Below, one piece after another: positions 2,620-32,031 of a stretch of DNA of 64,000 nucleotides. Numbering within the stretch: position 1 is the stretch's first letter; each line of letters starts with the position of its first letter. The DNA is taken from positions 11,431,832-11,495,831 of the forward strand of contig OZ316897.1 of the NCBI GenBank assembly GCA_973895155.1, read 5' to 3'. The position numbers were made by a program, and so were the translations under genes. This DNA is from Marsupella aquatica. Lineage: Eukaryota > Plantae > Marchantiophyta. Below the pieces are notes generated by a model. That model was not told where the DNA came from. It was given only the letters and a program-made list of their open reading frames with translations, and did no database searches.

Positions 2620-4449
2620 ATGCCCGCCTCGAGTGGGACCACAATGGACCCAAGAACTGTGACTGAGGGAGCTGCCAGACTTCAGAGTCTATCCGACATT
2701 ACGTGGCTGGACTTGTCGAGAAGCGTCATTGAGTACAAGGAGACGAAGCTTTTGGCAATGGCCCTCGTGAACAATGAGCTCCCAAACCTGAAAGTGCTTT
2801 TTCTCGAGGGAAATTCAGGAGATGTTGGGATGAGGGCGATGCTAAATGCTCTGAGTGCAGGCCATCTAAAAAGACTCGAGAAGTTCATTCTATGGGAAGT
2901 CTCGTCGTATAACCAAATCACCACAGCTGAAGAGGGCACAGATACCATTGCAGCTGCACTAATGGCCGGCAATCTGCCTAGATTAGACACGATGGACTTC
3001 ACAGGGTCGCTACCCAAGTTGATACCCGCCAGGAAGTTGTCAGAAGCGATCAAGCAGGTGCTCTGGGAGCGCTCATGCGGCAATGGAAGATTTTTGGAGG
3101 GTCTTAAGGTCTGCATGGGATGCCTGTTTTGCACCACAAGTGCAGAGAAAAATCAGACTTTAGAGTGCCTCCGCTGCTTATGTGGGAGACTGCACGCGTA
3201 TAGTGGAGATGATGGGATGAGGAAGATTGAGAGGGCACTCAACTTGACACCCATCGACAGCTTGAGGTTTCTCAGACTGCAACATAATCACATCGGAGAC
3301 GAGGGGGCTTCCAGTCTTGCACAACTTCTTCGGAGAGGTAAGCTGCCTCATCTGGAGGAGTTGGATCTGCGGAACAACCCAGTCGGTTATAAGGGTGCAT
3401 TGAAGATGGTCCTTGCTTACTTGAGGAATCCGCTGCTGACGGTAAGGTTGAAGCTTGATTGGCTCACTGTCCTGCTTCAAGAGAAGGCTGCCAGCTTGAG
3501 GGACAGTAATGTAAGACTCGAGTATAAGTTGAAGAAATTGAAAATACCTGATGATTCAGTAGTCATAGACCAGTTTATAAAATTCGACTACCAATTGAAG
3601 AGGCATCCTGGAGAAGGATGTTGTCGGAGTAACTCTCATAAACTGCATCTCATGTGTCAAGCACAACATGGAGGAGGACACTTCACGAGTCATCAGGTTG
3701 TGACAGAGGAAACCTTAGAGCCAATGGGCATTGAAATTAGGAATCGCTCAAGTTTTGGACTCTCATCTCGGCAAAAAACGGTTCAGAGAGATCTTGAGGT
3801 GGTTTTATCAGGAAATGAGTCACATGAGTCACCAGTGGTAAGTCATATTGAAGTGCAAAGAAGCATCCTTCCCTTGCACACAGGTCATTCCCCATCCATG
3901 CCCCAGAGAGACCCGAATGCGGGTCCGGATGGTAGACCAGTGTTAGATGAGGGGGCATTGTCAGAGTTACCTTCTCCTCGCCCGTCGACATCGTCCCGAA
4001 CTGAGAAGAAGAGAAAAATCGTAGGGGTCAACAGAATTTACATCACCAGTATATCCCGTGCTTTCGTGGGGGCCGCACAAGCTCTGGCCGCAGAAGCTCT
4101 TGGCAACCAGTCCGAGGGGCGGGATTCACAGCAGAAGAGACGTTGGCTTCCAGAGTGGATTCACCAGAAGTTCAGACAACACGAGTATTGGCCTTGGCAG
4201 AGTCGAGAAAAGACAAAGCGACAAATGGATTCTATCATGTTGGAGTTGTTGATGCTGGGTGAGCGGAAACCCAATGAGTTCTATAGCCTGTTTGGCCTCA
4301 GGCAGGTGTTGCTCCAAAACAGGAGCTACAGTGATAAGTATTCTCGTGTGTGGATTTGTAAATCATGTTTTTCGGGTTACTGTGAAACTCAGGTAGTGCA
4401 TCCCATTACAATTCATGACGAATTTAGTGCATCCCATTACAATTCATGA
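2620..4449 (+). CDS. TORNADO1-like RNI-type LRR protein lacking ROC-COR (paralogue 1, ~609 aa)
   Basis: Intronless ORF. The first ATG at 2620 aligns with the ATG of paralogue 2. LRRs: ITWLDLSRSVI, LPNLKVLFLEGN, LRFLRLQHNHIGDEGASSLA, LPHLEELDLRNNPVG. C-terminal LHLMCQ..H and FGLRQV...WICKSC resemble the TRN1 tail. No P-loop. Confidence 0.85.
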   Translation: MPASSGTTMDPRTVTEGAARLQSLSDITWLDLSRSVIEYKETKLLAMALVNNELPNLKVLFLEGNSGDVGMRAMLNALSAGHLKRLEKFILWEVSSYNQITTAEEGTDTIAAALMAGNLPRLDTMDFTGSLPKLIPARKLSEAIKQVLWERSCGNGRFLEGLKVCMGCLFCTTSAEKNQTLECLRCLCGRLHAYSGDDGMRKIERALNLTPIDSLRFLRLQHNHIGDEGASSLAQLLRRGKLPHLEELDLRNNPVGYKGALKMVLAYLRNPLLTVRLKLDWLTVLLQEKAASLRDSNVRLEYKLKKLKIPDDSVVIDQFIKFDYQLKRHPGEGCCRSNSHKLHLMCQAQHGGGHFTSHQVVTEETLEPMGIEIRNRSSFGLSSRQKTVQRDLEVVLSGNESHESPVVSHIEVQRSILPLHTGHSPSMPQRDPNAGPDGRPVLDEGALSELPSPRPSTSSRTEKKRKIVGVNRIYITSISRAFVGAAQALAAEALGNQSEGRDSQQKRRWLPEWIHQKFRQHEYWPWQSREKTKRQMDSIMLELLMLGERKPNEFYSLFGLRQVLLQNRSYSDKYSRVWICKSCFSGYCETQVVHPITIHDEFSASHYNS

Positions 4450-10559: not shown

Positions 10560-13500
10560 GTATAAAAATGTAAGAAGATTGAGTTAACCAGCTCACAAGA
10601 AATTGAATTATCAGTGGCACTCGTTGAGTGTCTAGCTTCCATTACAGGGTGACGTCGAAGCCCCACCCCGCTTGGCTCTGTCCACAAAATAAAATACGAT
10701 ACGAATTGTTTACACTCGGTAACAATTATCCTGTATACCTTTCTGATGCCGTCTGGCTACGTGATGCAATATGATGCAATGTGATGCACTTAGCGTGATA
10801 TTTCGGTTTGGTGTATCCAATTGGGGAAAAAAGTCCAAAAGGTATTTCCAGTGTTGACATTTGTGGCTTGACCGTCATCGTCTCTCCCATTCGTGGCGAG
10901 GACCCAATCCAATTCTTCATGCCGAAGAAATTCCTCCATGCCTTCTCTCATTCAGTCATTCGTTTGGACGCGAATCCATTCGCCTGTTCTCTTGAAAGGT
11001 TGTTCGAACTCACTGCAGTTGATTCAATCCTAAACAGATGTAAATCTGGTTTCGTGCTCTGTTCTTTGGGCGCCTTCGAGAGCAGTTTCACAAGTCGGGG
11101 TACAAACAGATCATATATGCCGGTGTCGTCAGAGGTTACTGTTTGCGTTTGACCAACACAGGCGATGAGTACGTCGTTTGAAGGCGTTCGACTTCAAGTT
11201 TTGGAAGCAACGACAAATTGTGAGACGAGGGGATCCAATTGCCGGCGGTCAATCCCGGTCAATTGGATCTCAAAGGCTTTGATGACCACTGTGTCACACC
11301 ATCAACGTTCTGAATTGCCAGGCTGGCGACTTATAAGAAAACAATCTATCATTGCGGTGGTCCTCTAGAGAGTATAGCAGGAAGTGGATATGGACTGAAA
11401 CCGTTGGATAGCATACGGGGAGAAACAAGCTTGGATAGCATACAGAGAGAAATAAGCTTTGTGCCACACTCAGCATCGTTTGACCAGTTCGCTCGTCTCT
11501 TAGTCCTTCTGGTAAACACTCCTCGCCACCTGAGCTCGCTTGGAGCTTTTCTCAATTTGAATACCTGCACCGTTTTGCTTCTTTAGTGACTTGGGGCTCG
11601 AGGATTTAAATTGAGGTGCTCTTGAACGTCATGAAATTGGGCAGACCGGATTTAAGAAGTGGCCATTAGAAATTTGTAGACGGAGAAATCGTTTTAATCA
11701 ATTTTTTTTATCATCGTTTTCGATCCAATCTTATTGAACGAGTCTGGAAGTGCACCGTCGCAGTACTTTTGGTTTCGTTCAATAGAATTTCATCAAATAA
11801 TTTTATCAACTCGTTTTCGCTCTCTTTCGCGGATCCATCTAGTTTGTTACTTATTTCTGGCAGCCATTCATCCTTACTCTTCGATTTATTCATTTGTTAG
11901 TATCGCTCGTTTCTAGTTAACCAGACTTTAATGTTATCTGGAGTGTCAGGCGACCAATTCTGTCACACCAAGATAATAAATTGCTGGGTGTCACTACGCA
12001 CACATTTCAGAGGATAGGACAGTTGTTTAGGTCGTTTCTGGTTGCACAGTATATGTCACACGCAGATCACGAATTGATTGATCAGCTCATGACACATCCT
12101 GTTGACAGAAAAAAAAGATCTTGAAGGTCTAGAGTACCGTTGTTTCCTCCGCAATTTATCTCATTTGTTGCTATCGGTGTTCTACAGGAAGGCTTTGTGA
12201 GCTGATCACGGAGAGGCCGCTTTTGCCAGGGCACCTCATCAGTGTGAGGTAGGAGAATTCCAGAGACGTGATGATTTGTTACACGGGTAAGGATGCTATT
12301 CCCAAGGCAGGTAAATTGGGTCCCCTATACTCGAGAAACTTACAGCTGGTTCACATCATAGTTCGAGCCTAGGCGACTGTATCCATGTAATATGGCTGCC
12401 TCGAGTGGCGTCACAATGGACCCAAGGACAGTATCTGAGGGAACTAACAGTCTTCAGAGACTATCCGACATTACGTGGCTGGACTTGTCGAGAAGCGTCA
12501 TTGACCAAAAGGAGAAGAAGCTTTTGGCAAAGGCCCTCGAGAACAATGAGCTCCCAAACCTGAAAGTGCTTTTTCTCGAGGCAAATGCAGGAGATGTTGG
12601 GATGACGGCGATGCTAAACGCCCTGAAGGCAGGCCATCTGAAAGGACTCAAGAAGTTCATTCTATGGGAAGTCTCGTCGTATAACCAAATCACCACAGCT
12701 GAAGAAGGCACAGATACCATTGCAGCTGCACTAATGGCCGGCAATCTGCCTATATTGGACACGATGGACTTCACAGGGTCGCTACCCAAGTTGATACCCG
12801 CCAGGAAGTTGTCCAAAGCGATCAAGGAAGTGCTCTGCGGGTGCTCATGCGGCAATGGAAGATTTTGGGAGAGTCTTCAGGTCTGCATGGGATGCCTATT
12901 TTGCATCGCAGGTTCAGAAAAAAATCAGACTTTAGAGTGCCTCCGCTGCTCGTGTGGCAGACTGCAACTGTATAGTGGAAATGATGGGATGAGGAAGATT
13001 GCAAGGGCACTCAAACGAACACCTATTGACAGCTTGAGGTTTCTCAGACTGCAACATAATTACATCGGAGATAAGGGGGTTTCTAGTCTTGCAAAACTTC
13101 TTCGAAGAGGTATGCTGCCTCATCTGGAGGAGTTGGATCTGCGGAACAACCCAGTGGGTCGTCAGGGTGCGAAGGAGATAGTCTTCGCTTACTTGAGGAA
13201 TCCGCTGCTGACGGTCAGGTTGAAGCTTGATTGGCCAACTTTCCCGCTTCAAGAGAAGGCTGCCAGCTTCAGGGACAATAATATAAGGCTCGAGTACAGG
13301 TTGAAAAAATTGAAAATACCTCATGATTCACTAGTCATAAACCAGTTTATAGAATTCGACTACCAATTGATGAGGGATTCTGAAGAGGGTAGTTTTCGGA
13401 GGAAGCCTCGTAGATTGCATCTCATGTGTCAAGCACAACATGGACAAAGACACTTTAAGAGTCACCAGGTTGTGAGAGAGGTAGACAGTGAGCCAAAGGG

Positions 13501-14706
13501 CATTGAAATTAGGAGTCGCTCAATTTTTGGTATTTCATCTCGGCAAAGAAAAGTTCACAGAGATCTTGAATCGGAGGATACGGATGAAGAAGGGTGGGTT
13601 TCATCAGGAAATGAGTTAGATGAGTCACCAGTGGTAGATCATATTGGAGCGCAAGGAAGCGACAGTTCCAGGCACCCAGGTCATCCCCCATCCATGTACC
13701 AAAGAGACCAAAATTGTACTCCAGAGTCAGATGACGGGGCAGATTCAGAGTTGCCTTCTGTCCCGCCTTCCGAGCACGCTCCTTCTGGAGATGAGATGAC
13801 AGTCAAAACTCTAGGAGTGCTGCGCCGATGTCGGGTTGCTTTGTTTGAGAGGACACACAATCGTCCCTCACTGACAAAGAAGAAGACTGTCTTGAAGACG
13901 ACGACAGGGGTCAACAGAATTTACATCACCAGTAAATCCTGTGGTTTCGTGGGCGCCGTAAAAGCTCTTAGCAACCAATCCGAGGGGCGGAATTCTGACC
14001 AGAAGCGACGTTGGCTTCCAGATTGGATTCACCATAAGTTCAGGCGCAGATATTGGCCTTGGCAGAGTCGAGGAAAGACAAAGCGACAAATGGATGCTAT
14101 CATGTTGGAGTTGTTGATGCTGGGTGAGCGTAAACCTAATGAGTTCTATAGTCTCTTTGGCCTCAGGCAGGTGTTGCTTCAAAACCGGAGCTGCAGGAAT
14201 AAGTACTCCCGTGTGTGGATTTGTGATCCATGTTTTTTGAGTTACTGTGAACGTCAAGTAGTGCATCCCATCACATGACGAAGTTGAACAGAAAGTCTCT
14301 TCCCATCTGGATCAACTGCATCAAGAACCGTATTTATCACCACATCTTGCAACGAATATCATCAATAAATAATCGTTGTATGATTTCCCAACCACAGTTA
14401 GCACCTGCTAGCACCTTCTTAGCTGAAATCCCGAGTAGAACCATTACTACATCGAATGAAGGTTCTCTTTGATTATGGTCCTACACAAGTGTCTTGTGCT
14501 TTGTGATTGAGTTGATTAATGTTCTGCATCTCCATGTTGAGCGACAGCCCGTTCGGTAACAATGGTTTAGGGTGAGCATCTTACATTGGTGATCATTGTG
14601 CAAAAATCCCACGCCATGTAATTAACCATCATAGTGGCAAGGTCGCATTAGGTTTGGGAAGGTTAAGGGAGCCATTGGTTGTGAAGAACTTGAGCTCGGC
14701 AAGCGA
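10560..14706. repeat. Segmental duplication, copy B
   Basis: Colinear with ~40-4897, including upstream region, LRR ORF and 3' flank. Confidence 0.9.
12392..14278 (+). CDS. TORNADO1-like RNI-type LRR protein lacking ROC-COR (paralogue 2, 628 aa)
   Basis: Intact intronless ORF highly similar to 2620-4449, with the same LRRs, LHLMCQ and FGLRQV..WICDPC motifs. Confidence 0.88.
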   Translation: MAASSGVTMDPRTVSEGTNSLQRLSDITWLDLSRSVIDQKEKKLLAKALENNELPNLKVLFLEANAGDVGMTAMLNALKAGHLKGLKKFILWEVSSYNQITTAEEGTDTIAAALMAGNLPILDTMDFTGSLPKLIPARKLSKAIKEVLCGCSCGNGRFWESLQVCMGCLFCIAGSEKNQTLECLRCSCGRLQLYSGNDGMRKIARALKRTPIDSLRFLRLQHNYIGDKGVSSLAKLLRRGMLPHLEELDLRNNPVGRQGAKEIVFAYLRNPLLTVRLKLDWPTFPLQEKAASFRDNNIRLEYRLKKLKIPHDSLVINQFIEFDYQLMRDSEEGSFRRKPRRLHLMCQAQHGQRHFKSHQVVREVDSEPKGIEIRSRSIFGISSRQRKVHRDLESEDTDEEGWVSSGNELDESPVVDHIGAQGSDSSRHPGHPPSMYQRDQNCTPESDDGADSELPSVPPSEHAPSGDEMTVKTLGVLRRCRVALFERTHNRPSLTKKKTVLKTTTGVNRIYITSKSCGFVGAVKALSNQSEGRNSDQKRRWLPDWIHHKFRRRYWPWQSRGKTKRQMDAIMLELLMLGERKPNEFYSLFGLRQVLLQNRSCRNKYSRVWICDPCFLSYCERQVVHPIT

Positions 14707-15720
14707 AACAGATTTGCAGTGAGTTTTCATGGTTGTAGAGATACGTCAAATAGGTTGACCGTCCCATCCAATAATTTGCTAACTCCGTCACATTCCTTAC
14801 CTACAAACTGCTTCCAATTCGGAAGATCTGCGGCAGTGCCAAGACTGACGAGCCTCCCTCCCTATCATCGTATCTGTGTTTTCGTAATTCTTTAGCTGAT
14901 AGACCTCCCAGTCTTGGAAATGTAACTCTCGCTCTATGTAAATTCCTTCCGCAAGTTAATGACTTTGCTCACCAAACAGAGTTGCTCTCTCGTCAGGTTC
15001 TACCTTCAGGTGATCCCGTCTCAGAGGGCTTCTCTCGCTCTCTGAGAATCTACTGAGAAGATCTCAGATCTTCGCATTTTAAAGAACAAAATCCAATCAA
15101 TGACAGTTATTCATCCACCAGCTGTAGTCGACCATTTGTTATGAACTTACAACGATAGAAACTTGAGTCCTCTAAATATGCAAACAACATTGTCGAATGA
15201 GTGTGCCTAGCTCTGCTCGTAAACAACTGAAGGCCTTGGACTACTCAGCAATAATCGCTCTTCTCGTTGGGGAGGAACGAAGAATAAACAGGAAGTCAAC
15301 TACCAGCCAAATCCCACAACGGGTACTCATCAGCTACCAATTGTCAATGATGACATTCTTCTCGAGTGGTACGGGACACAAGGAAAACAGATACACACAT
15401 CCCAAACTTTTTTGACATCATCATGGAATGCAACGTCAGGGCCGGAATCAGAAGGTACCAACTAAATGTACTCAACGGAGTCAAAGCTCGTCTGTGGCCA
15501 GAACAGCTGATTTTGGAGGTGTCTCCTGGCTGCTTGTCAATCAATCCCCTATGCACTTCTTCCCGGGGAACTGCTTCTCGATTTGGGGAGTTCGCCAACC
15601 CCTTACAGTACTTGCTCTGGAGCTTGTATCCCAGTCATCCGTGGCGGACGGCTAGTATGAAACACTAGGCCAGAGGTATCAATGGGAAGTTTTCTAGGAC
15701 GAGGTCATGTGAATCCGGTA

Positions 15721-16147
15721 TCATTCCGCCCTCAACTTAACCTCATCTTCATAATTCCCTTCTTTCAGCCCATATCGCCACCCAAGGTACCCGACAGTGC
15801 CTGCAACACTCCCTAGACCAACTTGTCCAATTGCCTGTCCCCAGCCTGATCCCTTCCCCTAGCCACTGCAGCTACCTGCCACTCGATTTCGTCCCTGTCC
15901 CACATCTGTATCTCTGTTCTGATTGCCAGCAGCCCCGTGGCAATGACTACTGCGATGCCTGAACAAAGCGCAAGATCGTGCTGGTGAAAGTCGATCCTTG
16001 GGAAGCGAAAATGCGGTACCGGCTCAACAGGAACTGCGAGGTGCCGACGCCGGTGCCAGCAATTGGCCCAGATTGGACGTGCGTGTGGAGGATCTGGTGA
16101 GAGAAGGGCTGATCTTCGTGGTACGTGTGAGGCCAAAATCGCGACAT
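15721..16147 (-). pseudogene. Pseudogene copy of the fungal-type membrane protein gene
   Basis: Starts MSRFWPHTYHEDQPFSHQILH. It frameshifts after TSTILR, lacks the DRSWRLLENRGQLECDDW core, and frameshifts again. Its 3' end matches the stop region at 19436. Confidence 0.9.
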
Positions 16148-17713
16148 TGTATCGGGAGATGAGCTGAGCTGAGCTGAGATGAGATGAGGTCCGATAACGA
16201 AGTGGCGCGTTTTTGAGGTTGCTGTTTGATCTCAATCAACAAGGTGACAGAAACCAACCTCGACGCAGAATCCGCTTTCTCATCATCCAGCCGAGCTAAT
16301 ACTTAGTCTACCTCGCCACACTCCTGTCTGCTCTCCAAGACATTACGCTCTACAGAATTCCTGCCGGAAACCGGCAGAGTGAAACGAAGTGGAGTTCCAT
16401 GAAGTGATGATTAGAGTTAGAGGTGGAAATGTTCGAGAGAAAACGAAAACAGTCATGACGACTCTTATCCACTCTCGGATAGGGAGGTGATGAGACACAA
16501 ATCACCCAACGACTGCTGCTGGCTTGTCATCAACGGCAAGGTGAGATGACTGTCTTCATTTCCAGGACTGACCCGATTATGAACTAGAAAGTCGTCGTTC
16601 TCTAATTATCGATGGGTTGCTTGCAATTCATTACTTACACAATCGCTCTCCAGATTCATAAATTCAATCGGCGTCTGTTTGCCTTCAAATGGGGAAACTC
16701 GTGCACGACCTTCAAACGAGGAAACCTGGTAGTCCCAGCGAAAATCTTGAACCTTGCTGTGTTTGATTTCATGAAAACCAGAAGGACTTGAAAACAAAAT
16801 GTGGAAACGTAGCTCGAGCTTCTTGTACAACAATCTACAGTAGCCTCGCATCAATCCGGCCACAAGACTATTTCTTGCTGAGAAGAAAACTGTATAGAAC
16901 CCGAGCACTTGGCGAAACTTTTCAAGTAGCAAGTAACTTACAAGTGTAATGCAATGGTACCTGGTTGTGACGGTGTGTACCCTGAGGTAGGGCAATTATG
17001 ATTGTGTTTGTTGTCAAGAATACCTATACCCACTTCTTAAGAGGTATATGTATAGAGTAAAGTCCTGTTTATGCCGTGAAACACGACAGCTTCAGCTCAA
17101 GGTTTTTGGGGCTATTATTGGGCATAATGGTTGTGAAGGATTAATTTACTACACTTAAAGGCCCTAAAGATTTTTATTTTTTAAATACTTTAATTAAATT
17201 AGAGTAGAATTATACTGAAATATTTTCTTTCAACTTTAGCAAAAATAGAGGAGAATCTTCCTAAAGAGTTGATCCACATATCGGGACACTATGCTCCAGA
17301 CTGCCTTGGAAAATACAAATGGAAAAATAACAAAGTGCAGTAAGTTGGATGGACCCTGCCAATTAAAGTTTACGTGATGGACTCCCACTAGATTTGTTTT
17401 GGCAAATTGGACCCTCTAATGATAAATAGAGTGAGTTTCTAAAGGACTAAACTGCCCAGTTCTCCTAGTACCCTGACTTACCACATTGCTACGCAGTCTT
17501 GTGCTATGGTTTACCATGGTGTTGCGAATGCAGTCAGGAGCCATGGGGAGTGAATGGGGAATGGATGCCATGAATGAATGAAAAGTACACTAACTTAAGC
17601 TAAATAATAAGTGCGACAGACAATGTCCATAGTCTTCCATAAACACTTGTGCTGGCCATTTACCCCCACCCAAAGCGGGGAGGGAGTGTGGGAATCGATC
17701 AGGAATTTCAAGC

Positions 17714-18012
17714 TTCGACGAGAGAATTTTGAGGCTTAAGGTGTTGTCTGAGAGCTAAAATCCGCCCACAGATACGAAGATCAGACAATTGTGAGAGTAG
17801 AAGAAGTTGGAATCTTTCCATAAAAGATAGCAAGGAATCTCTGGCGTTGGGCTTGCAGGAATCGCGTTCGACGAGAGAATTTTGAGGCTTAAGGTGTTGT
17901 CTGAGAGGTAAAATCAGCCCACTGATACGAAGATCAGACAATTGTGCGAGTAGAAGAATTTGGAATCTTTCCGTAAAAGATAGCAAGGAATCTCTGACGG
18001 TGGGCTTGCAGG
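17714..18012. repeat. 153-bp tandem duplication
   Basis: ttcgacgagagaattttgaggcttaagg...gggcttgcagga x2; seen as a 51-aa repeat in the minus-strand ORF. Confidence 0.9.
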
Positions 18013-19435
18013 AGTGGCGTTTGACCACTGTTCCCACTACTAAGAAAGGAACCCACCGTACTATTCCCGGAAACCTAAACAACGACGGGAAGATAAGGAT
18101 CACCACGGTAGCTCTTCGCACTGAATTAGAATGGCTGCAGCTGACATCGACGAACGATCAATTCCATTCTCATTCTCTGCATCTGTGAAGGCACATGGCT
18201 TTTGGGATCGAGCATACCTCGATGCGGCCTATCCTTCGAATTGACGTCAAAATACGATTATCCAACATGCCCCAGTGGAGACAACCGCAGTTTTGTGAAT
18301 TGATCTATGCAATTGTCAAGACCCTGTTGTTAATCCTTAGCTAAGTATTGATTATTATTATGGTGGAAATCCAAATGTATTGCTAGCCTGTTCGACATGT
18401 TAGACTATGGTGTGAGATGGAGAGAATGACGCTACTGTCACTTGCAGAACAGGCGAGAAAGGTTGTCATACTCTTGGATGAAACGTATTGTAAGCATGAC
18501 AAATGTACCTCTTTTTTTTTGTTGCCTTGAATACCGAAGGCTGACCCATCCAACAGACGATAGACGATCAACTCCGGAGCATGCACCTCTGTAGGGTAGC
18601 CCACAAGGTACTGGGTACAAATGAACTATTTCGTCCAGGTTTGACTGTACTGACCCCAGAAACTTTACCGAAAGAATCGGCACTTTGGTTTAACGGGCTG
18701 CAACGGTCACCAGTTCATCACCTGAATCATTCCTCCATTGTCGATTGATGTCTAACGAGCCCTGGTGAACAAAAAGTGCGCCACTCCGCTAATGTCACTT
18801 AAGCAGTCCACGGCATCAAAGCGAGCGAGGAAAAATTCATTAGTACATAGGGAGTAGAAAATGTCTCTTGGCATAACACCTAGAAAACAAGCAATCCACG
18901 AGAATGATCAAGACAAGAACCCTGCCCGACCAGCTCACAATGCTTGCCCGAGACAAGAAATGTGGAAGGACAGCAAGCCGGCACCTCCTTTCACACAACA
19001 ATGACTTCTCATACTCGGCAAGACGAGAAGGCCTTACGCTCCACAGATGTTATTTTCCAGTCCGTGTATACTCCAATCGAGAGAACTCTTGCCAGAGGAG
19101 TTTATCATCCAAAAGTCCACTGCTATGATATCGGTGACAAATCGGCAACACCCTGAACATGTCTTATCCTTTAGGCCAGATGCCACAATGCCAAGTGACG
19201 CGTTGCCCGGTCAGCATTCCAGTAGGGCTGAAGCAAATTTTAAAAAGTACCCATTTCATAGCAATCAACAAGATCTAGACGGGAACTGCGTCTGGGGAAC
19301 TTCGCCAACCCCTTACAGCACTTGCTCTGGAACTCCTATCCCAGTCATCCGTGGCGGTCAGCTCCTATGAAACATTAGGCCAGAGGTGTCATCGGTAAGG
19401 TCCTCTTTGTAGGAGGAGATCTTTTGAATCCCTTA

Positions 19436-19960
19436 TCATTCCGCCCTCAACTTACCCTCATCTTCGAATTTCCCTCCGTTCAGCCCATATCGCCACCCAA
19501 AGTACCCGACAGTGCCTGCAACACTCCCTAGACCAACTTTTCCTATTGCTTGTCTCCAGCCCGATCCCTTCGCGCTCGCCACTGCAGCTACCAAGCCGGC
19601 CGCCATGCCCCCGTAAGTCCAATCATCACATTCGAGCTGCCCTCTGTTCTCCAGCAGCCGCCAGCTCCTATCCTGCCATTCGATTTCGTCCCTTCCCCAC
19701 ATCCGTATCTCTGTTCCGACTGCCAGCAGCGCTGTGGCAACGAGTGCTCCGACGCCTGAAGTGCGCAAGATCGTGCTGGTGAAGGTCGATCCGTTGGGAG
19801 CGAGATTGCGGTACCGGCGCAACAGGTGCAGCGAGGAGCCGACGCCGATGCCAGCAATTGCCCCGGTTTGGACTGCACGAGTTTGGACGTGCGCGTGGAG
19901 GATCTCGTGAGAGAGGGGCTGATCTTCGTGGTACCGTGTGTGAGGCCAAAATCGCGACAT
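19436..19960 (-). CDS. 174-aa Gly-rich multi-TM protein resembling an uncharacterised filamentous-ascomycete family
   Basis: Intronless, ATG at 19960. Motifs MSRFWPH..HEDQP, RMWGRDEIEWQDRSWRLLENRGQLECDDW and GYFGWRYGLNGGKF, with several small-residue-rich hydrophobic helices. Fungal affinity is recalled, not searched. Confidence 0.8.
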   Translation of the reverse strand: MSRFWPHTRYHEDQPLSHEILHAHVQTRAVQTGAIAGIGVGSSLHLLRRYRNLAPNGSTFTSTILRTSGVGALVATALLAVGTEIRMWGRDEIEWQDRSWRLLENRGQLECDDWTYGGMAAGLVAAVASAKGSGWRQAIGKVGLGSVAGTVGYFGWRYGLNGGKFEDEGKLRAE

Positions 19961-21028
19961 TGTATCGGGAGATGAGATCACCTGAGCTGAGATGCGCTGA
20001 GCTGAGATGAGGTCCGATAACGTGCGTTTTTGAGGTTGCTGTTTGATCTCAATCAACAAGGTGACAGAAAACAACCTCGATTTTTATCGGGAGCTGAGCT
20101 GAGCTGAGATGAGGTCTGGTCCTGTAACGAAGTGGAGCGTTTCTTCGGTTGCGGTTTGATGTCGATCGACAAGGTGACAGAAACCAACATCGACGGAGCA
20201 TCAGCTTTCGGATCATTCAGCCGAGCTGATAATGACGAATCTCTCTCTTGCAACGAGACGACGCTCTACAGCATTGCTTCCGGAAACAGGCAGAGTGAAA
20301 CGACGAGGAATTCAGCGAAGTGATGATGATGGAGGATAAAGTTGTGTCCAAAACGTCAGTAAACTGAACTGTTGGCACTTGCTTCGTTTTTTCTTTTCTC
20401 TTGAAAACGAGCATTTTCTTTCTTTTCTCTTGAAAGACGCACTTTCTTGAAAGACCAACTACAAAATAAACTACCACAAAGAGTGAGGGCTGAGGGCTGG
20501 ACTCAATCCAAAGAAAGAACAGGGAGAGACCCGACAATTAGTAGATCTGAACAGTTGTCCACTAGCTAAAATCCCAATGAGGGATTGACCATCTGCAAAT
20601 GCATGAAAAGACCTCAATCTTACTATTAGATCCCCATGGGAAGTTACTTTGAAGGCCTAGGGTCTAGACTGGAGCCCATCACCTCAGGGGGATAATTTAG
20701 GGGTGGGGGTGGAGGAGTGCTAGGAGTAGTGCACCACATTTGAAAATAATATTACCTGTGAAAAGAATTGGTGTAATAGGGGGTGCATGCGGAGAGTAAA
20801 TGGACTAGGGAGGCCACATGTGAAGAGGTGAGCTACTGCCATCAAGGGTCAAGAACTATAGTGAAACGGACAACTCTTCTACAATCACTTGAATAAACTT
20901 TGGTCACCTGCTGTCATATAGGGTGGGCACTTTTTATCATCAGATCTACTCAAGTTCAAAGGACTGATAATTGGGAGAGCACTACAAACAAAGGATCACA
21001 ACATGAATAACCTTGCACTCTTAAAACA

Positions 21029-22447: not shown

Positions 22448-22653
22448 CCTAAATCTAGGCGGTAATCACCCACATTTAGATCGAATGTCTGGGATCTGGA
22501 TTACCACCTTACGCAAGAGTATGTACCTAATGCAGATGGCACAGGAAAATCCTAAATCTAGGCAGTAATCACCCACACTTAGATCGAATGTCTGGGATCT
22601 GGATTACCACCTTACGCAGGAGTATGTACCTAATGCAGATGGCCCAGGAAAAT
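22448..22653. repeat. 103-bp tandem duplication, each unit with a hairpin
   Basis: cctaaatctaggc(g/a)gtaatcacccac...ggattaccaccttacgca...aggaaaat x2. Confidence 0.92.
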
Positions 22654-24549: not shown

Positions 24550-27500
24550 CTAAGATTCAAGAATTTCTTTAAGAACTGCACTTAGGTCCTGCGCAGCCTT
24601 CGAGACCTCCCCGCCTCGTCTGCAAACATACGAATCAATGAGTTCGAATGGAGCCATTTCGAGCTGACCAGGCAATGTGAGAAGGCAACCGGGAAACGCA
24701 AACAAAAACCATCCCTCTACTTCCAACACACGAGCCTGCAGACTTGGAAAGCCAACCATTAGCATTCCTCTACTTCCAGCACACGTGCCTGCCAAAAAGA
24801 ATGTAAAACTGCGAGCACTTGCAATGAAATGCTGCAACATTTCAGAAACAAGACGTACCGTGTTAGGGGAACCAAACTACGGCTCACTTGTTGCAACTCC
24901 TGATGACAAACTTTGCAGCGCTCCAGCCTAATTAAATGGATGCAAGAATCAGGTTAGGAGGTGTATATCATACATACTATTCCGCGAGCTCACACACGGC
25001 CGAAGCAGATTGGCGGATAAGGGCCGGAAGAAAAGATATGGAGAAGATGTTCATAATCCAACTATGCATTTCCTTGCTCATAAATTATAAAGGGTAGTAA
25101 GGACTGTGATCCAAATGGCTACATGAAGATACTGAAAACAGCAAAATATCTAGTCGTCCAGGAAACTGGACAATTTGCATTAATCAGCCTCTTATCACAT
25201 AAATCCACAATCCAAACAATTCCAACTCTTTCCCTTGAATGCTTGCACGAGCAACGCACATTAGCCAACTAGGTAGAGGAAAGTAATGAGATTGACTCCC
25301 CGTCGTGAACACATAAGGTGACGCAAATGTGTACCTCTGCTCCGCTTGCAGATCAACTCCCAACGAAGGGTTAGCAGATATTGCTGCATGAATGGTCTGA
25401 CCAAACGTTTTCACCAACTTGTGTACTAATGTAATCGCTGTTAAGATATGCCTGCAATATTCCGAATCACGCCATGCATCCCACTCATTCCGTGAAAATT
25501 TGGTGAAAATAATTAAAAGGGTCTGAAGGGAAGCAAAAACAAGCGAAAGATCTTTTCATGTATCCTTACGAAACGAACTCGTAAGATGATTGCCATTCTG
25601 AACAGAAATCTAACCCTAATGCATATAACCACACAAGCCGAAAGCTCCCGGCTCCGCTACAGTACCAGTCAATACCTTTCATTATGACTGCAGAGCAATT
25701 CGTTCAACAGTGGCAAAAGTAATCCAGTGACTTCCAATGATAAAACACTACTTCTTTCCATTACGACGTTCAATACATCCACCAATACCTGTCACAGAAG
25801 GCAGCTAAGTATGAGCGAAGCACAGATTAATTTGACACTTCTGTCTGGGTCAATCTCATTAATCTCTGTAAACCATATGCTGGGCCAACTGTCGTGTCAA
25901 AATCAGCCACGACTTTATTGCCAAGAAAAAGTCGACCGATTGTCCACTCCGGAGCCCTAGCGACGTAAACGTTTACGACTTCCATTTCCAATTACAATGT
26001 GAGAAGTAAGAAAATTTACTAAAAAGAGTAGTTCACAGAACAAGGTAGCGGCAGAGATCGACCTTCCAATCACAACAACGTATATATTATTTTAAAGCAC
26101 AGCTAAATCTCGAAAAGGCCGAAACATTGGGTAAAACCCCGCAGAGTCTCATAAAATATTCAACGTACTAGTCATTTTCTACACTATATAAATAAGGAAT
26201 AAATTAGGAACTTGATACGTACAGAATGATCAGCAAGTTTTGCCATTGCCTCCATTGCACCCTTCACATCATTTTTCATCCAAAATCTTCTCACCACCTA
26301 CATAAAGGGCCGAGGCATTCATTCAAAATATTAGCTCAGTCGATGCATAAACCAAAAATATCAGACCTCACATTTAAAGAGCAGATTTTCCACTAAGCGT
26401 GACTTCCTCGGACGTCCCCGGCTCAAGTAGAGGGATACACGCAAATAATGATTTCCATAGCTTGCTCGATAACATCCACAACATTCAGAGCAGGAAATAA
26501 TTCGAACAAGCAGACAACATAATCTGTGCATATTTTAATACGTCTGCAAGAAGCCGGTACAAGTGGTGCAGTTGAAGTCTACAGAAATCCACCTGCATGT
26601 TGGTCAAACGTGATTGCATGATGCTAGTCATGGTATGGTGCTGCTGCATTAGCTTCTCGATGAGCTCTTCATCCGACACTAACAGAGATCCGCTCGTTTC
26701 CATGCTCATTTGACTGCCCCTCTGCACTTGCAACGGCTTTACCGTGTTAAGTGATTTTGACTTTAATTCAACCACGTCATTAGACACAGGTATCGTAAAA
26801 AAAGCCAAGCAGCAAGAGCACCCTTCAATTAGTCTTCAAGCACATTCCCTCAAGAAAACGCACTGAGTGCTTTGTCAACAAGTAAAATACTGCAGGTGGA
26901 GGCCATACCACCTGAGCAAGATTAGAAATTTGAGCTACTTGTTGGTTTGAAAAGTTTGACAATACCTTAGACCGAAAAACTACAACAATATGAATAGGTT
27001 GAGGGAATCATACCGGAGCGAATGAGCTGAAATCCAACCCTAAAGGTTTCACTCCCCCATTTGTTGTCTGTCTTTGCGTCTGTGCAACATCATGCCTTTC
27101 CTTTCGATCAAATTGAGCAATCAATCCTTGCATTCTATTGGCATCAACTCGACCTTCATGAGACAACAATAACAGAAACTCTTCATAGTTACGACTCAGG
27201 ATCATCAGGTAAACTCGCTTAGTGCAACCGAGATCAAATAAACCTGGCATTTTCATCAATCGTTCGTATTTCTGAAGACAGCAGACCAAGGATGCATCTT
27301 ATCAAAGATTCTCAGTAATGGCCCATTGGAACACGCATTGCAATTGTGTGCGTTTCAAGGCCCTACACTCCAAGAAGTAAATTCACTAAGAACAACTGAT
27401 TTGGCTATATCTCGTTCACATCCAGACAACTAAGTCTCAACAAACTCTACTAGGAAATTGCCAGTAATTGTTCATTTACAGAGCGGCAGGATTCTTTACC

Positions 27501-30500
27501 AACTATAAAACCATCAAAGTTCATGACGTTGGTTTACCTGTTGTAGAAGCCTCAACGGAACTGGCGGGCCTGCTTGTTTGATGCAGTATGACATCACTAG
27601 AAATCGAATGCGACACGCCATATCCCTTATGAAGCGAATCACTTCTGTGGGCTGAATAGGAGCTGCTCCTTTTGAACTTTCTCAAGTCATTGTAAGAAAG
27701 ATCGTCGCCATCGCCTGTGTTTCTATGTGGTGCAGAATTTAGACTAGCGTCATGACTGCCTTTATCACCATTAACATTGCTCCTGTGCGATGAACTGGTG
27801 ACATCTGCATTGGAACTTATATCTATCCTCATTGCATCCGCTCCAGCGTCTCCCCTCAACCCCTCCAAACTTCTCTGATCAGATCTACCGCTTAGCGACA
27901 CTAAACCGCCTGATGACTTCGTCGAACTCGAATCTTCCGACCCTGTAGGTGCGGGTTGAACATGTCTGTCTAAATCAAGAGATGGCATAAAGTTCGAGAT
28001 AGAGAGCACATCCGATCTAGTTGACGACCGAACAACATTTCCTGCATAAACCCTTGTGGAGGTATTTTTCCTTGGGGTTTGGGATGTAAGTGCAGGCGAA
28101 GAAGTAGCGACGTTGCTTTTGCTCGAGACGGGAATGGTAGCTTTTGAAGACAAACTTTGCAAACTGTCTGTAACTGCAACACCAATCTTAGAATTATAAT
28201 CATGCTTTCATTGCTAACCCATCTATGTAAAAAAGCGAGACACAAGACAACTGCATTTCCAGGGTCCAATTGCTCTAATGCAAAGCCAATCAACGTACTT
28301 CATTCGGGTAGTATCTTCAACCTGAGGAACTCTAAATGCTACTTTTCCCTCCCCACTCACATTCAAATTCAAAAGTGAACTGAAAACTTTGTTTGATGCA
28401 AGTAAACTCGATCTCCTTTGATGGACGACAACTTATCAAATTGGTCAGGAGCAAGCAGATAACCTATCTTATGCGTACAAACCTTGTCAACAGAGAGGAT
28501 GTTTATCAAAACAAGGAGTTTCTTGCAAACATTGTCTGTCCCTCAGAAGCAGCGAAACTAACCCTTAGCAGTGGCCAGACTCATCTCTCTCATTGAAGAA
28601 GATACAGATGTTTCCAAGACATCTGGAACGCCACCCTTCATGCCATTATTTTTTGGTGTCGAATGCTGATTAACTTGATGACCATTGGTATTCACCTTCC
28701 CGGGGACCACAGTAGCAGCTCGCGAAGCATGGCCGGCTTGGAATGGTGAAACACGCTGCTGACAAACAGAAGAGGATCGAGTCAACATGGAGAGTATCAC
28801 GGTTTTCTCAGAATCCAAATGAGAAGCTCTAGGACGTCACCTTTGCATTCCTTAAGACTTGAATGGCATTTCTTTGGTCTATTAATAGTCAATCGGTTAC
28901 CTTACCATCAGATCAACGACCCAGACTCCAACGCAGCTTTGTTGAAAAGAGCAGCCGATAAGTTTCCCTTCATGTACACTTAAGTCGGCAAGCTTGGACC
29001 AGCCAACGTCAACCACATCGTGACATCTGATTGGTTCCCAGGACAAAACCTGGAACCCACGGAGAAACAACTTCAATGCCACATGCCTGGTTCCCAGATC
29101 ACTGACCCAAGAAGCCGTATAGAATTTATAAAACAATATGAACGAGACCAAATGTGCTATACGGGGTGGATCCAATGCTCCAAAATCAGATCTCTACGTA
29201 GGAAACTGATATTTTCAAAAGATTCACTCGTCGTATTAAACTCGAACTCAGAAGAAATCAATTCCAGAAGCATCCGTCAATCTGTCAAATTCTCACAAGA
29301 ATTCCACCCACCTTCAAGCTATCATGCATTGCAGTCAACAAAGTGCGCCCATCTGGGTTGAAAGTCATCGCCCGCACCCCAGTTGCCTGCTGCAAGGAGC
29401 AAAGACGACGATGATAATGAAAATCAGCGTTGACAATACGGATCTCAGACTCTAGGACAAGAATAGAGATAGCCTTGAGGGACTATTAACTCTTAAGGAA
29501 GTTCTTTCCAACGGGACCAGAGGCATATGTAGCCCTAAGCTGAGAACCGTTGAACAGACGAGTGCTACCGGACAGGTTCAGATATTCTTTACTGCCGTAA
29601 ATTGGGATGCGTCTAGTACCTCTGGTCCGGCAGATCCAATTAGTTCAAAAGTCTCGAGGTCCCAAAATTTGACAGTCCTGTCAGCAGAGCCTGAGAAATC
29701 CACCAAAAAATTGCGAAGAATCATTTACCCGGTGGTGATACATTAGCATAATTGCGATTTCGTAACCCAGACAGCAATCGCATGATGGAACTGACGCACA
29801 TGTCCGGCCATAATTCACACCTACACCGTTCGAACGAATACAGCTTGTGACTCACTGTTTTAAACAGTATGCCATAAGTACACCCGTCAGCAGATATTTA
29901 TGATTGCACATAGGCTTCTACCTGTGGCCAGAAGGAATTCGTGTGGATGAAAATCAAGGGACTGAATTTGTCCTTCGTGGAGTTTGAAGTCGTGCATGAG
30001 CTTCCCAGCGGTAAGATCCCATAACTGCAACCAAAAATTATTTTCGATGAAGCGGCCACCTGGTTACTAACACTCCAATCTTGAAGGTAAATCACGCACG
30101 CAGCGACAAGAACTTCGCCGAAACGAACATAAAGTGTTGAATGCACGTCCACAGTGATCTCATTCACCTTTAAGGTGGATGCTCACCACCTCCAGTAAGA
30201 GTGTGCATGACGGGAGACTCACCTTCACGGAATTGTCTTCTCCACCGGAAACCACCCATCGGCCATCGGGACTAAACTTTATTGTATTGATGCCACGGGT
30301 GTGCCCCTTGTAGGTATGGATACAGCCCTTGCGCCTGATGTCCCATATTTTCAGATTCGTATCAAGCGATCCTGATGCAAAAAACTCCCCGAACGGATGG
30401 AAGCTCACCGACACACAATTGGATCTGTGCCCGGTAAGGGTCCGTACGACTGCAATCCATCACCCCACACCACATCATCACTCGTACGCTAAGACAGCAT

Positions 30501-32031
30501 TCGCTTCAAAGGGCTCTCCATAATAGATAGAGCGCCGAAAGAGCAAATCAACGGCAAGCTACTGTGGACTCGGACCACCCCAGTCTCGACGCTACAGCCC
30601 ATGCCCCATTCAAACAGTTTCCACAACATTCACGGCATTATCTGCACAGATATGACGAGACGCTGAAACATGGCACTCTTGCTTTCAACCAATAAAGTGG
30701 AAATTACTTTTTGCCTCCTCCAGGTCCCATAGTTTGATGGTTCCACTGGCAGCACCAGCAACAACGAGGACCTCCGCCGCATCAAATGTCACCGATTCAA
30801 CTGCGCTGGTATGCCCAGCCAAGCTCTGCATCACACACCAAGTCAGTCGATCGGGATGGGAACAAACAGAAAACGATGACCTCAGTCCACACGAAGCAGG
30901 CATCTTCAAAATGGATCTGATGAACGAACCAAATGAAACTAATGTTACAGCAGAGGACAAATTCTGCCGAGGTGATTCTACACGTTTGTCAGTGTTTCCC
31001 GCGCAATAGAGGATACTGAGACACTCAATAACGTGCAGAATTGAAGGAGAAAAAACAGACAGTCGTACAAGCATCCGAGCTGGTATCACACTCAGTGTAC
31101 CCTTGCGACCCTGACGTCGCCCTGGTAGCAAACTGTAGGTAATCTCAACCCTCTGTACATCGACGACGAGCGCGTCTCAATGCAATCTCAAAATCAACAA
31201 TCAAGATTGAGATGTTGAGCCCTAGGATAGGGTTGGGGCATTGCAAGCCGTAATGCATCTCCAATTTGTGGACGGGTACGACGGGAAGGATTGTACATTA
31301 CTTGGAAAAAAATTCAGGTCACGCCTGGGGAGAGTCATGCGATCAAAAAGATCGTTCGGAGCACAAAAGAAAGAGGCTTAGGAGATGTGCAGTGCTCGAG
31401 CAGGATAAGACAGCGTTCGTGGAGGGAGGGATGATAAGAATGTAAATGGAATGGACATACCAGAATGGCGTTCGGTTTCCCGATGGCCCACATGTTGACC
31501 TTCTGATCTTCTCCGCCGGTGACCAGCACCCGCGAAGACTTCTTCCCAATCGTGAGACAGTTGACATTGGAAGAGTGTGCAACAAACTCCTCTGCATAGT
31601 ACCTGGTTAAGGAGTGCAAAGAATTGCGATCTTTCTACGAATCTTCCGGAAAACAAGAGACGTTAATAGAGACAGAAACATATGTAGACCACGGTACCCT
31701 CAAAATGCCTTCATTTCGCCCTGCACAGCGTCAGATGCCCGAAGCAGATTCCAAAGTTCACCGCAAAAGCACAAATCCACCAATAGAACTCAACCATAAT
31801 CTAAGTTATTTACAGCATGCATTGCAAAAAAGGAATATGACCATCGACAGCGAGTTTCTGACAGCGAGGGGCATCTGCGAAAAACTCGCCCCGTTCTAGA
31901 AACTGCAAATTCGCCACTGCATTGTGGAACGTCGTACGTCAGGCTCTCATTCAAACGGCTAAATAAGTGAATAGGAGACCACATTGACATCAGAGGGGCA
32001 GGATACGAAGTTTGTAGGCACGCTTCGTCAT
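24550..32031 (-). CDS. KTN80: Katanin p80 WD40 repeat-containing subunit B1 homologue (multi-exon)
   Basis: Exon 1 MTKRAYKL (32031-32007), then [78 protein letters not shown] and [12 protein letters not shown]-terminal con80-like exons include [27 protein letters not shown] and [16 protein letters not shown]. Internal boundaries were only partly traced. Confidence 0.95.
31592..32006 (-). other. U12-type (minor) GT-AG intron, first coding intron of katanin p80
   Basis: Donor GTATCCTG, branch point TCCTTAAC ~13 nt from CAG acceptor; splicing gives in-frame YKL-Q-EFVAH. Confidence 0.88.

Follow-up and report, generated by a model that had tools for sequence, protein, structure and literature searches.

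A DUF1757-family gene of very probable fungal origin in the liverwort Marsupella aquatica

The gene, its duplicate and their plant neighbours

The window analyzed here is a stretch of 64,000 nucleotides of Marsupella aquatica DNA (contig OZ316897.1, assembly GCA_973895155.1), and all positions refer to it. Its features are collected in Table 1. The open reading frame (ORF) under study starts with ATG and runs through 174 codons to a stop without interruption, as the ORF list and the translation show, so that the initial annotation was right to describe an intact, intronless gene. The encoded protein belongs to the DUF1757 family (PF08560), scoring 22.8 bits against a gathering cut-off of 21 (E = 8.6e-5). 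This margin is narrow because the Pezizomycotina branch of the family diverges from the Pfam model, which is also matched by 87 of 106 aligned relatives. We estimate the chance of a 174-codon open frame at the local base composition at ~0.003; the homology of the ORF, with E values of 1e-65 to 1e-82, rules out a chance open frame. The GC content of the ORF is 0.59 (GC3 0.63), compared with 0.48 (GC3 0.51) for native ORFs.

Table 1. Features of the window around the DUF1757-family gene
Feature	Coordinates	Strand	Basis or remark
Host LRR gene	2548..4449	+	Pfam LRR_6, LRR_4
Host LRR gene beside the decayed copy	12392..14278	+	Pfam LRR_6
Decayed second copy of the gene unit, in tandem	15560..16440	-	tblastn in three frames, repeat families D1-D11, pairwise alignment
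Dispersed repeat on the 3' side of the gene	17988..19231		self-blast
3' flank, part of the duplicated unit	19270..19435	-	aligns with 15560-15723
Intact intronless DUF1757-family CDS, very probably of fungal origin	19436..19960	-	ORF list, translation, Pfam, AlphaFold2
Top-conserved family motif, codons 92-105	19646..19687	-	forms the short helix that separates hydrophobic helices 2 and 3
Upstream leader in the duplicated unit	19961..20350	-	(CTCAG)n arrays and internal tandem duplication
Multi-exon katanin p80 host gene	25187..31131	-	Pfam, exons searched individually
Host AIG1-like GTPase gene, synteny marker	44301..45854	+	Pfam AIG1

An AlphaFold2 model of the 174-aa protein (mean pLDDT 95.6) has helices at residues 17-49, 60-86, 92-104, 106-128, 135-160 and 166-173. 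Four of the helices are hydrophobic and rich in Gly and Ala, in agreement with the glycine-rich hydrophobic helices noted initially, and a strongly conserved short helix lies between the second and the third. The latter carries the motif EIEWQDRSWRLLEN, in which columns E94, W95, D97, R98, W100, R101 and L102 are near-invariant in the family alignment. The invariant residues Q14 and W95 are present in the ORF protein. The consensus of the aligned family reads MSRF.PH..Y.EDQP at the N-terminus, RM.GREEIEWQDRSWRLLENKGQ.E.DDWTY in the core and GWRYG..GGK at the C-terminus. The motifs that the initial annotation had given for an uncharacterized Pezizomycotina family agree almost exactly with all three.

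The gene had been described as locally duplicated with one copy kept intact, and this was borne out. The unit 19270-20350, composed of coding sequence, leader and 3' flank, recurs at 15560-16440 with ~82-93% nucleotide identity. The leader contains the pentanucleotide (CTCAG)n arrays reported for it (19969-20011 and 20091-20113) and, in addition, an internal segment of ~113 nt duplicated in tandem (20024-20080 and 20137-20193). The coding region of the second copy is broken. Its remnants (15724-16147), located 3.8 kb from the intact ORF, show four deletions (3, 15, 81 and 1 nt) and one 2-nt insertion relative to it and no longer contain the conserved motif. Self-blast located a second direct copy of the 1.2-kb dispersed repeat at 22965-24150 (74-81% identity). 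Within the first copy, positions 18401-18800 are high-copy in the genome: depth there reaches 1000-4000, the baseline being 15-35.

Host genes, namely LRR, katanin p80 and AIG1-like genes, are found on both sides of the ORF, so the plant context described earlier, with katanin p80 and LRR genes, stands. The katanin p80 exons on the reverse strand comprise a con80 exon at 25187-25555 (Katanin_con80, E = 1.5e-8) and WD40 exons at 30160-30414 and 30685-31131 (E = 1.2e-21 and 2.7e-6). The LRR gene next to the decayed copy had its best matches in the liverwort Calypogeia fissa (59-64%), followed by Riccia (40-42%). The best matches of the AIG1-like gene were also from Calypogeia fissa, and for LRR and AIG1-like genes the next best came from Riccia or Sphagnum. 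The two best Calypogeia co-orthologues of the AIG1-like gene (57% identity) are located on contigs of 24,099,576 and 17,188,687 bp. The Calypogeia orthologue of the DUF1757 gene is on a 17.19-Mb contig of the same size as the smaller of these (17,188,687 bp), and this equal size hints that both genes lie on one Calypogeia contig. No synteny signal came from the LRR neighbour, whose Calypogeia relatives are located on an 8.05-Mb contig.

Support from reads was assessed with contig pieces assembled from independent DNA data sets. The ORF was present in five DNA-like runs from three studies, filed under two organism labels. Contigs from the three studies cover the ORF together with the flank on either side, all at one host-level depth (13-17x in data set X1, 25-36x in X3; repeat-rich bins excepted), and individual contig pieces span the 3' boundary of the ORF (19161-19531). 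The claim that the sequence is integrated, and is neither contamination nor a chimera, is thereby upheld. Taken with the homologues described below, the ORF is very probably a genuine gene of the liverwort nucleus that derives from a fungus.

Homologues and the probable donor

With a threshold of E<=1e-3, a database search yielded 210 homologues, and the only plant protein in the best 120 of these was that of Calypogeia fissa (76% identity); the other matches listed were fungal and mostly from Pezizomycotina. Although Riccia and Sphagnum proteins were present in the database, neither these nor any Marchantia, moss or other plant protein except that of Calypogeia appeared among the best 120 of 210 matches. 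The searches covered the best 120 of 210 and the best 150 of 272 matches, and more distant plant homologues may exist beyond these. Named clusters represented Helotiales (including three Hyaloscypha), Sordariomycetes, Dothideomycetes, Lecanoromycetes, Eurotiomycetes, Xylonomycetes, Pezizomycetes, Orbiliomycetes and one chytrid. Identity to the liverwort protein was 58-64% for Helotiales, 50-56% for Sordariomycetes and 27-47% for deeper classes. A metagenome scan revealed no further liverwort-like copy, the maximum identity being 62%. When positions 10-26 kb of the window were compared with 80 environmental fungal loci by tblastx, similarity was restricted to the two coding copies and no fungal flank was detected; fungal similarity is today confined to the coding sequence. 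The closest environmental fungal loci are intronless like the liverwort ORF, and the intron state is therefore uninformative.

Phylogenies and topology tests included fast searches with 61-64 rows and a full search with 39 named rows. In the maximum likelihood (ML) trees the two liverwort proteins formed a clade with 99-100% support, placed among Helotiales/Leotiomycetes, which is the nesting within ascomycetes that had been proposed as a check on transfer. In the named-taxon tree, liverworts grouped with Leotiomycetes with an SH-aLRT value of 83.9, and a six-row subgroup reached 99.8. In an unconstrained tree rooted on the chytrid, the fungal classes were recovered and the liverworts fell within Leotiomycetes. 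The deep backbone of the trees is weak and the protein is short (alignment of ~175 columns).

On these sequence comparisons a Leotiomycete of Helotiales type, related to the fungi of liverwort rhizoids, is the most probable donor. Leafy liverworts harbour Helotiales fungi in their rhizoids (bioRxiv 10.1101/2025.04.01.646537). The alternative that survives best, although it is unlikely, accepts the transfer and places the donor on the stem of Leotiomycetes and Sordariomycetes or in an unsampled class. Indeed, approximately unbiased (AU) tests did not reject placing the liverworts outside Leotiomycetes alone or outside the two classes Leotiomycetes and Sordariomycetes together (p = 0.28-0.72), and the backbone of the Helotiales-type group is a polytomy. 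However, the top identities are all of Helotiales type among the matches listed, and every ML tree put the liverworts on the Helotiales side, with a 93/97 split and the two SH-aLRT values given above.

Retention in two liverwort lineages and competing origins

Conservation was analyzed by comparing the liverwort proteins with the fungal alignment. Each liverwort protein retains 37 of the 38 columns that are >=80% conserved in fungi, and the two liverworts agree with each other in all 38; in variable columns they agree in 28 of 48. Differences between the two liverworts cluster in columns that are variable in fungi (Mann-Whitney p = 1.2e-4). The DUF1757 proteins share 76% identity between Marsupella aquatica and Calypogeia, compared with 57-64% for neighbouring genes. 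The retention of 37 of 38 conserved columns in both species indicates that the gene has been under purifying selection after transfer in both lineages, as judged from these protein comparisons. Among the variants listed for four runs, none breaks the frame. The sole variant listed within the ORF, 19501 A>G (organism B), causes the exchange F154L, and Leu is found at this position also in Calypogeia and in the decayed copy.

It is very unlikely that the gene is a silent relic, a transferred open frame that survived by chance. Its surroundings are rich in repeats and its sister copy has decayed, as would suit a relic. Against this, the conserved columns are kept in both species, substitutions fall mostly at variable columns, the listed variants leave the frame open, and the decayed copy demonstrates what neutral decay looks like at this very locus. 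Slightly less probable still are two independent transfers from similar fungi, one into Marsupella aquatica and one into Calypogeia. Both lineages may encounter the same Helotiales symbionts, but the strongly supported liverwort clade argues for one event, as do derived states that are absent from fungi, namely His in place of a conserved Ala at residue 11 and a common C-terminal tail. The AIG1-like co-orthologue on a Calypogeia contig of the same size as that of the orthologue speaks in the same direction.

Vertical descent, in which DUF1757 would be an old eukaryotic family inherited by liverworts and lost in all other plants, has a lower probability again. The family does extend beyond Dikarya, with a chytrid member, the Euglena protein NDUEG9 and a chrysophyte mention. 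Without a species backbone, AU tests did not reject a monophyletic Pezizomycotina that excludes the liverworts (p = 0.20-0.32). A vertical position was likewise unrejected (p = 0.113) in a 69-row test with very long outgroup branches; in the corresponding tree a long Orbiliomycete branch joins inside Hypocreales as a long-branch artefact. Once the fungal class backbone was imposed, however, forcing the liverworts outside Pezizomycotina cost 68 lnL and was rejected (p-AU 0.0001), in support of the fungus-to-plant transfer proposed by the initial annotation, and forcing them to the Orbiliomycete root was rejected as well (p = 0.006 and 0.0024). Vertical descent is also opposed by the identity gradient across fungi, which is exactly that of a Leotiomycete protein, by the chytrid-rooted tree, and by the matches listed, which contain no plant protein apart from that of Calypogeia.

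The least probable reading is a fungal contaminant or assembly chimera, an ORF of a rhizoid-associated fungus misjoined to plant DNA: the Helotiales of leafy liverwort rhizoids and the elevated GC content would fit it, but ORF and flanks have equal depth in three studies, contig pieces span the boundary, and a decayed duplicate is present at the locus. Moreover, fungal sequences, environmental or named, reach at most 64% identity, while the liverwort proteins share 76%, a clade of their own and derived residues, and the Calypogeia copy sits on a 17-Mb contig.

The favoured history is thus a single transfer. A DUF1757 gene of Pezizomycotina would have entered an ancestor common to Marsupella aquatica and Calypogeia fissa, most probably from a Helotiales-type Leotiomycete; Hyaloscypha hepaticicola, a rhizoid symbiont, belongs to Helotiales. 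The gene would then have been kept under purifying selection in both liverwort lineages. Later, a unit of ~1 kb was presumably duplicated in tandem in Marsupella aquatica, and one copy decayed. Our confidence is high that the gene was transferred and has been maintained, considered apart from any function of its product.

NDUEG9 homology and comparison with known systems

A single-sequence search of PDB sequences gave no match, and the family profile was needed to find a relative. The profile matched chain E9 of 8iuf, NDUEG9 (E = 9.1e-14), with profile positions 16-150 aligned to chain residues 25-153. Further support for this relationship is provided by structural comparison. Foldseek aligned the model with NDUEG9 at TM scores of 0.67/0.70 (probability 1.0), and VIA-align gave a Z score of 13.3 with an rmsd of 3.5 over 151 residues, the next match reaching Z 5.3. 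The motif EIEWQDRSWRLLEN aligns with DRAYRLRHN of NDUEG9. The liverwort protein is thus homologous, by profile and fold, to an accessory subunit of supercomplex I+III2+IV from Euglena gracilis, with 151-166 residues aligned, a DR..RL..N motif in common and an identity of ~20-22%. NDUEG9 is a transmembrane subunit that bridges complex I and complex III2 in Euglena and has been called Euglena-specific (PMC10884005); the homology with DUF1757 contradicts this label.

The profile search retrieved no family chain from the PDB other than Euglena NDUEG9. Plant and fungal complex I structures are also contained in the PDB. As no plant or fungal complex I subunit was matched, and an association with respiratory complexes is known for Euglena NDUEG9 alone, a respiratory role outside Euglena is an extrapolation. 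The NDUEG9 homology nevertheless suggests a role in the mitochondrial inner membrane. By analogy with NDUEG9, the liverwort protein might insert into this membrane without a cleaved presequence and act at the periphery of respiratory complexes, a proposal that we regard as tentative. It is more doubtful, again by analogy, whether the fungal protein was recruited as a foreign accessory of the respiratory chain, within a wave of transfers from Helotiales to Jungermanniopsida tied to rhizoid (ericoid-type) symbiosis. If true, a plant respiratory supercomplex would contain a component gained by horizontal transfer. A literature search for DUF1757/PF08560 found no functional study, in fungi either, and the homology with NDUEG9 provides a first testable functional hypothesis for this uncharacterized fungal family.

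The Tim17-like fold that the initial annotation had suggested was not confirmed. Tim17, Tim22, Tim23 and NDUFA11 resemble the liverwort protein in being small proteins of the mitochondrial inner membrane with four glycine-rich transmembrane helices, and one source names a Macrophomina member of the family Tim17-like. However, none of 106 family members matched Pfam Tim17 at E<=0.01, and Z scores of 5.3 against a TIM23-complex chain and 4.4 against a TIM22 chain are within the noise for helical proteins. NDUEG9 is the only clear relative in structure and sequence. A HIG1 lead obtained from a protein atlas was discarded, its score of 0.76 being below a trustworthy level.

The DUF1757 proteins of Pezizomycotina, as in Hyaloscypha bicolor, Coleophoma crateriformis and Mollisia scopiformis, closely resemble the liverwort protein, with a length of ~170-175 aa, common N-terminal, central and C-terminal motifs and 58-64% identity. 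The liverwort gene differs from them in its chromosomal location between plant genes and in its own derived His11 and C-terminal tail.

Published fungus-to-bryophyte transfers include FB lectin, microbial-type terpene synthases, the killer protein KP4, RDS1, YANB and others (PMC12513842). As such transfer is well documented, the event itself is no surprise. In a literature search DUF1757 was nowhere mentioned as a transferred gene, and the ORF adds a solid new case to a class of transfers whose frequency in bryophytes is well established. The case is clean and well controlled. The favoured donors, Helotiales, are intracellular symbionts of leafy liverworts, and the intact copy beside a decayed one serves as an internal control. 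Like the published examples, which are short, intron-poor fungal genes, often in LTR-rich regions and under selection (PMC12513842), the ORF is short and intronless. Unlike the lectins and the secreted, defence or metabolic enzymes usually reported, it encodes a small integral membrane protein, and the homologue of this protein is of mitochondrial type.

The intact gene and its decayed duplicate

The intronless 174-aa frame predicted from the DNA alone is present on the minus strand and encodes a protein of the DUF1757 family (PF08560), hereafter the ORF. Its match to the Pfam profile scored 22.8 bits (threshold 21), a small margin over the cut-off. Motifs that the initial annotation had given for the family were reproduced by the consensus of an alignment of the ORF protein with 105 relatives. 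With this alignment as input, AlphaFold2 yielded a confident model (mean pLDDT 95.6). Long helices at residues 17-49, 60-86, 106-128 and 135-160 are accompanied by a short helix (92-104), which bears the best-conserved motif, and by a C-terminal helix (166-173). The (CTCAG)n leader was located as two arrays and also contains an internal tandem duplication of ~113 nt.

The unit carrying the ORF occurs a second time, whole and in identical orientation, as the reported local duplication implied. In this second copy the coding part has suffered four deletions (3, 15, 81 and 1 nt) as well as an insertion of 2 nt, and the central motif is gone. The second copy is a pseudogene.

Features of the window
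Feature	Position	Strand	Remarks
Intronless LRR gene	2548-4449		LRR_6, RNI-like; paralogue of 12392-14278
Intronless LRR gene	12392-14278		LRR_6, RNI-like
Decayed copy of the unit	15560-16440	minus	pseudogene; coding part 15724-16147
Tandem repeat, two copies	17714-18025		153 nt, 93% matches
Dispersed 1.2-kb repeat	17988-19231; 22965-24150		direct copies, 74-81% identity
Duplicated unit	19270-20350	minus	contains the ORF
DUF1757 coding sequence (ORF)	19436-19960	minus	ATG to stop, 174 codons, uninterrupted
(CTCAG)n arrays of the leader	19969-20011; 20091-20113
High-copy element	7163-7515; 9481-9691; 21001-21400; 58360-58577		four copies, 70-89% identity
Tandem repeat, two copies	22448-22653		103 nt, 96% matches
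Katanin p80 exons	~25.2-31.1 kb	minus	con80 (E 1.5e-8), WD40 (E 1e-21); each exon searched singly, unjoined
AIG1-like GTPase gene	44301-45854
GC-rich islands	8001-9000; 32001-33000; 38001-40000		GC 0.54-0.59 (window 0.45)
162-aa ORF	32274-32762		no Pfam match

Integration into liverwort DNA

The ORF had been described as embedded in plant DNA, and its neighbours agree with this. The LRR gene nearer to the ORF finds its top matches in Calypogeia fissa (59-64%), followed by Riccia (40-42%). The best named matches of the AIG1-like gene are from Calypogeia (57%), with weaker, partial matches in Sphagnum, and exons of katanin p80 are present. Judged by these LRR, AIG1-like and katanin neighbours, the DNA around the ORF is that of a liverwort nearer to Calypogeia than to Marchantiopsida. 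Beyond liverworts, the two LRR genes matched a single protein, a fish NLRC3, in its LRR region (35% across 21% of the query length). The AIG1-like gene is one of a large family in liverworts, with at least 17 Calypogeia paralogues across many contigs; Sphagnum proteins align to just ~37% of its length.

The stretch was present in five DNA-like sequencing runs from three studies, under two organism labels. Four of these runs were mapped onto 15401-21400 as assembled contigs, which are evidence of presence and connectivity. Contigs evenly tiled the decayed copy as well as the ORF and its two flanks (~13-17x in run X1, 25-36x in run X3), the single gap being a microsatellite, and individual pieces spanned the 3' boundary (19161-19531) and the body (19510-19967) of the ORF. 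The ORF lies in liverwort DNA and is neither contamination nor an assembly chimera. Among the variants listed, the only one in the ORF was 19501 A>G (F154L), seen in runs X3 and X5 of organism label B. The Calypogeia protein and the decayed copy also have Leu at residue 154, so that Phe154 is the derived state in the window assembly.

The Calypogeia orthologue of the ORF sits on a contig of 17,188,687 bp, and one of the two best co-orthologues of the AIG1-like gene is likewise on a contig of exactly 17,188,687 bp. This equality of size hints at conserved chromosome-level synteny. A contig of 24.1 Mb carries the second co-orthologue, in keeping with the recent whole-genome duplication described in C. 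fissa (bioRxiv 10.1101/2025.04.01.646537).

Several repeats were observed in the region. Between the two direct copies of the 1.2-kb repeat lies the intact gene, together with 3.7 kb of other sequence; within the first copy, 18401-18800 is ~100-fold over-represented in reads. The two copies may be LTRs, and the gene may lie within an old element. Over the high-copy element at 21001-21400, contig depth ranged from tens of thousands to hundreds of thousands, whereas the baseline was 15-35.

Homologues and phylogenetic placement

Among 5.8 billion protein clusters searched, 210 homologues were retrieved. Among the best 120 of these 210, which were examined, the sole plant was Calypogeia fissa (76% identity), and the next named matches were all Helotiales (58-64%; Coleophoma, Amylocarpus, Stipitochalara, Mollisia, Venustampulla). 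Xylariales and Hypocreales (~50-56%) followed among the matches listed. HMMER, run in full against 1.84 billion representatives, gave 272 matches. Clusters looked up include Hyaloscypha bicolor, H. finlandica and Hyaloscypha sp. and, more distantly, Orbilia, Arthrobotrys, Trichophyton, Diploschistes, Letrouitia, Macrophomina, Massarina, Patellaria, Tuber and the chytrid Chytriomyces. Calypogeia aside, the named relatives among the matches listed and the clusters looked up were fungi without exception. A member from Talaromyces proteolyticus falls within Hypocreales beside Cladobotryum (97% support) and may reflect fungus-to-fungus transfer or contamination. A 749-aa protein of Colletotrichum phormii combines a HET domain with a DUF1757 part; fusion, or the merging of gene models, may explain this protein.

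Maximum-likelihood phylogeny bore out the proposed fungal affinity. The liverwort pair (the ORF protein and its Calypogeia orthologue) formed a clade with 98-100% support in every tree and fell among Helotiales-type sequences in all four: a quick search (119 rows), a careful search (69 rows; Helotiales side of a 93/97 split from Sordariomycetes), a FastTree analysis (164 rows) and a full search of 39 named rows rooted on the chytrid. The last recovered the fungal classes and joined liverworts and Leotiomycetes with SH-aLRT 83.9 (99.8 for a six-row subgroup).

Other placements survived constraint tests to different degrees. Two positions of the liverworts were not rejected, one outside the Leotiomycete rows and one outside Leotiomycetes plus Sordariomycetes. 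Nor was a monophyletic Pezizomycotina that left out the liverworts and the chytrid clade, with no further constraint (p 0.20-0.32); the weak deep backbone of this short protein lets the outgroup slide beside Leotiomycetes. The groups for these tests, and for the second of the two 61-row tests described next, were picked after trees had been seen. Constraining the liverworts to the Orbiliomycete root gave p-AU 0.113 with 69 rows and very long outgroup branches, and was rejected in a 61-row set with intermediate lineages (p 0.006 and 0.0024). Once the accepted backbone of fungal classes was imposed, its groups taken from taxonomy alone, a position outside Pezizomycotina was rejected by 68 lnL units (p-AU 0.0001); left free on this backbone, the liverworts landed inside Leotiomycetes, in a tree not significantly worse than the unconstrained one (p 0.09). 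An origin of the ORF from fungi within Pezizomycotina has good support, and a Leotiomycete donor is our best estimate, not proven.

In tblastx against 80 environmental fungal loci, no similarity was found beyond the two coding copies. The closest fungal loci are likewise intronless (~510 nt for 168 residues); missing introns are therefore uninformative on the transfer route. Composition of the ORF is fungal-like (GC 0.59, GC3 0.63; fungal homologues GC 0.52-0.60) compared with native ORFs of the window (GC 0.48, GC3 0.51), a difference due partly to the Gly/Ala-rich protein. Rhizoids of C. fissa, axenic cultures of which were set up by its genome's authors, host a nutrient-dependent intracellular symbiosis with Hyaloscypha hepaticicola (Helotiales) (bioRxiv 10.1101/2025.04.01.646537). 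The favoured donor group is thus the most intimate fungal contact of such liverworts. In bryophytes, fungal and bacterial transfers are frequent and often lie in LTR-rich regions (PMC12513842).

Selection and predicted function

Each liverwort kept 37 of the 38 columns that are ≥80% conserved in fungi; both share the lone change, His in place of Ala at residue 11. The two liverworts are identical at 38/38 conserved columns versus 28/48 variable ones, and their 38 differences sit at higher fungal entropy (2.42 vs 1.77 bits; Mann-Whitney p 1.2e-4). Between the two species the ORF protein is more conserved (76%) than the LRR (59-64%) and AIG1-like (57%) proteins, and the neighbouring duplicate exemplifies unconstrained decay at this locus. 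These patterns provide good, if indirect, evidence for a functional protein in liverworts. The ORF is a real, old and selectively maintained fungus-to-liverwort transfer: homologues, trees, contig depth and the decayed duplicate support the original proposal of a transfer with one copy intact.

Our literature search found no study of DUF1757; one preprint lists its domain among those enriched in freshwater chrysophytes and says nothing more on the family. A Tim17-like fold had been suggested as a check. Membership of the Tim17 family was rejected, as no DUF1757 member (0 of 106) matched the Tim17 profile; for the fold, structural Z scores of 4-5 lie within the noise. The family profile matched a single solved protein in the PDB, NDUEG9 (8iuf chain E9; E 9.1e-14), and no other chain of the family was found there. 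The AlphaFold2 model aligned with NDUEG9 at TM 0.67/0.70 (Foldseek) and Z 13.3 over 151 residues (VIA-align; runner-up Z 5.3). As a subunit of the Euglena supercomplex I+III2+IV, NDUEG9 spans the membrane and has a portion in the intermembrane space; it touches UQCR9, a subunit of complex III2, and is ordered in the supercomplex only (PMC10884005). Because of its homology to NDUEG9 the liverwort protein could be a small protein of the mitochondrial inner membrane that acts at the periphery of respiratory complexes, a tentative and rather doubtful assignment.

Fungus-to-bryophyte transfers are already known, and the ORF adds another example. Its donor is ecologically well matched, and it offers a new lead to the function of an uncharacterised family. 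NDUEG9 was described as a subunit of Euglena complex I and its supercomplex and termed Euglena-specific by its authors (PMC10884005), whereas fungal DUF1757 proteins, from chytrids to Pezizomycotina, are homologues outside Euglena; NDUEG9 therefore appears not to be lineage-specific.
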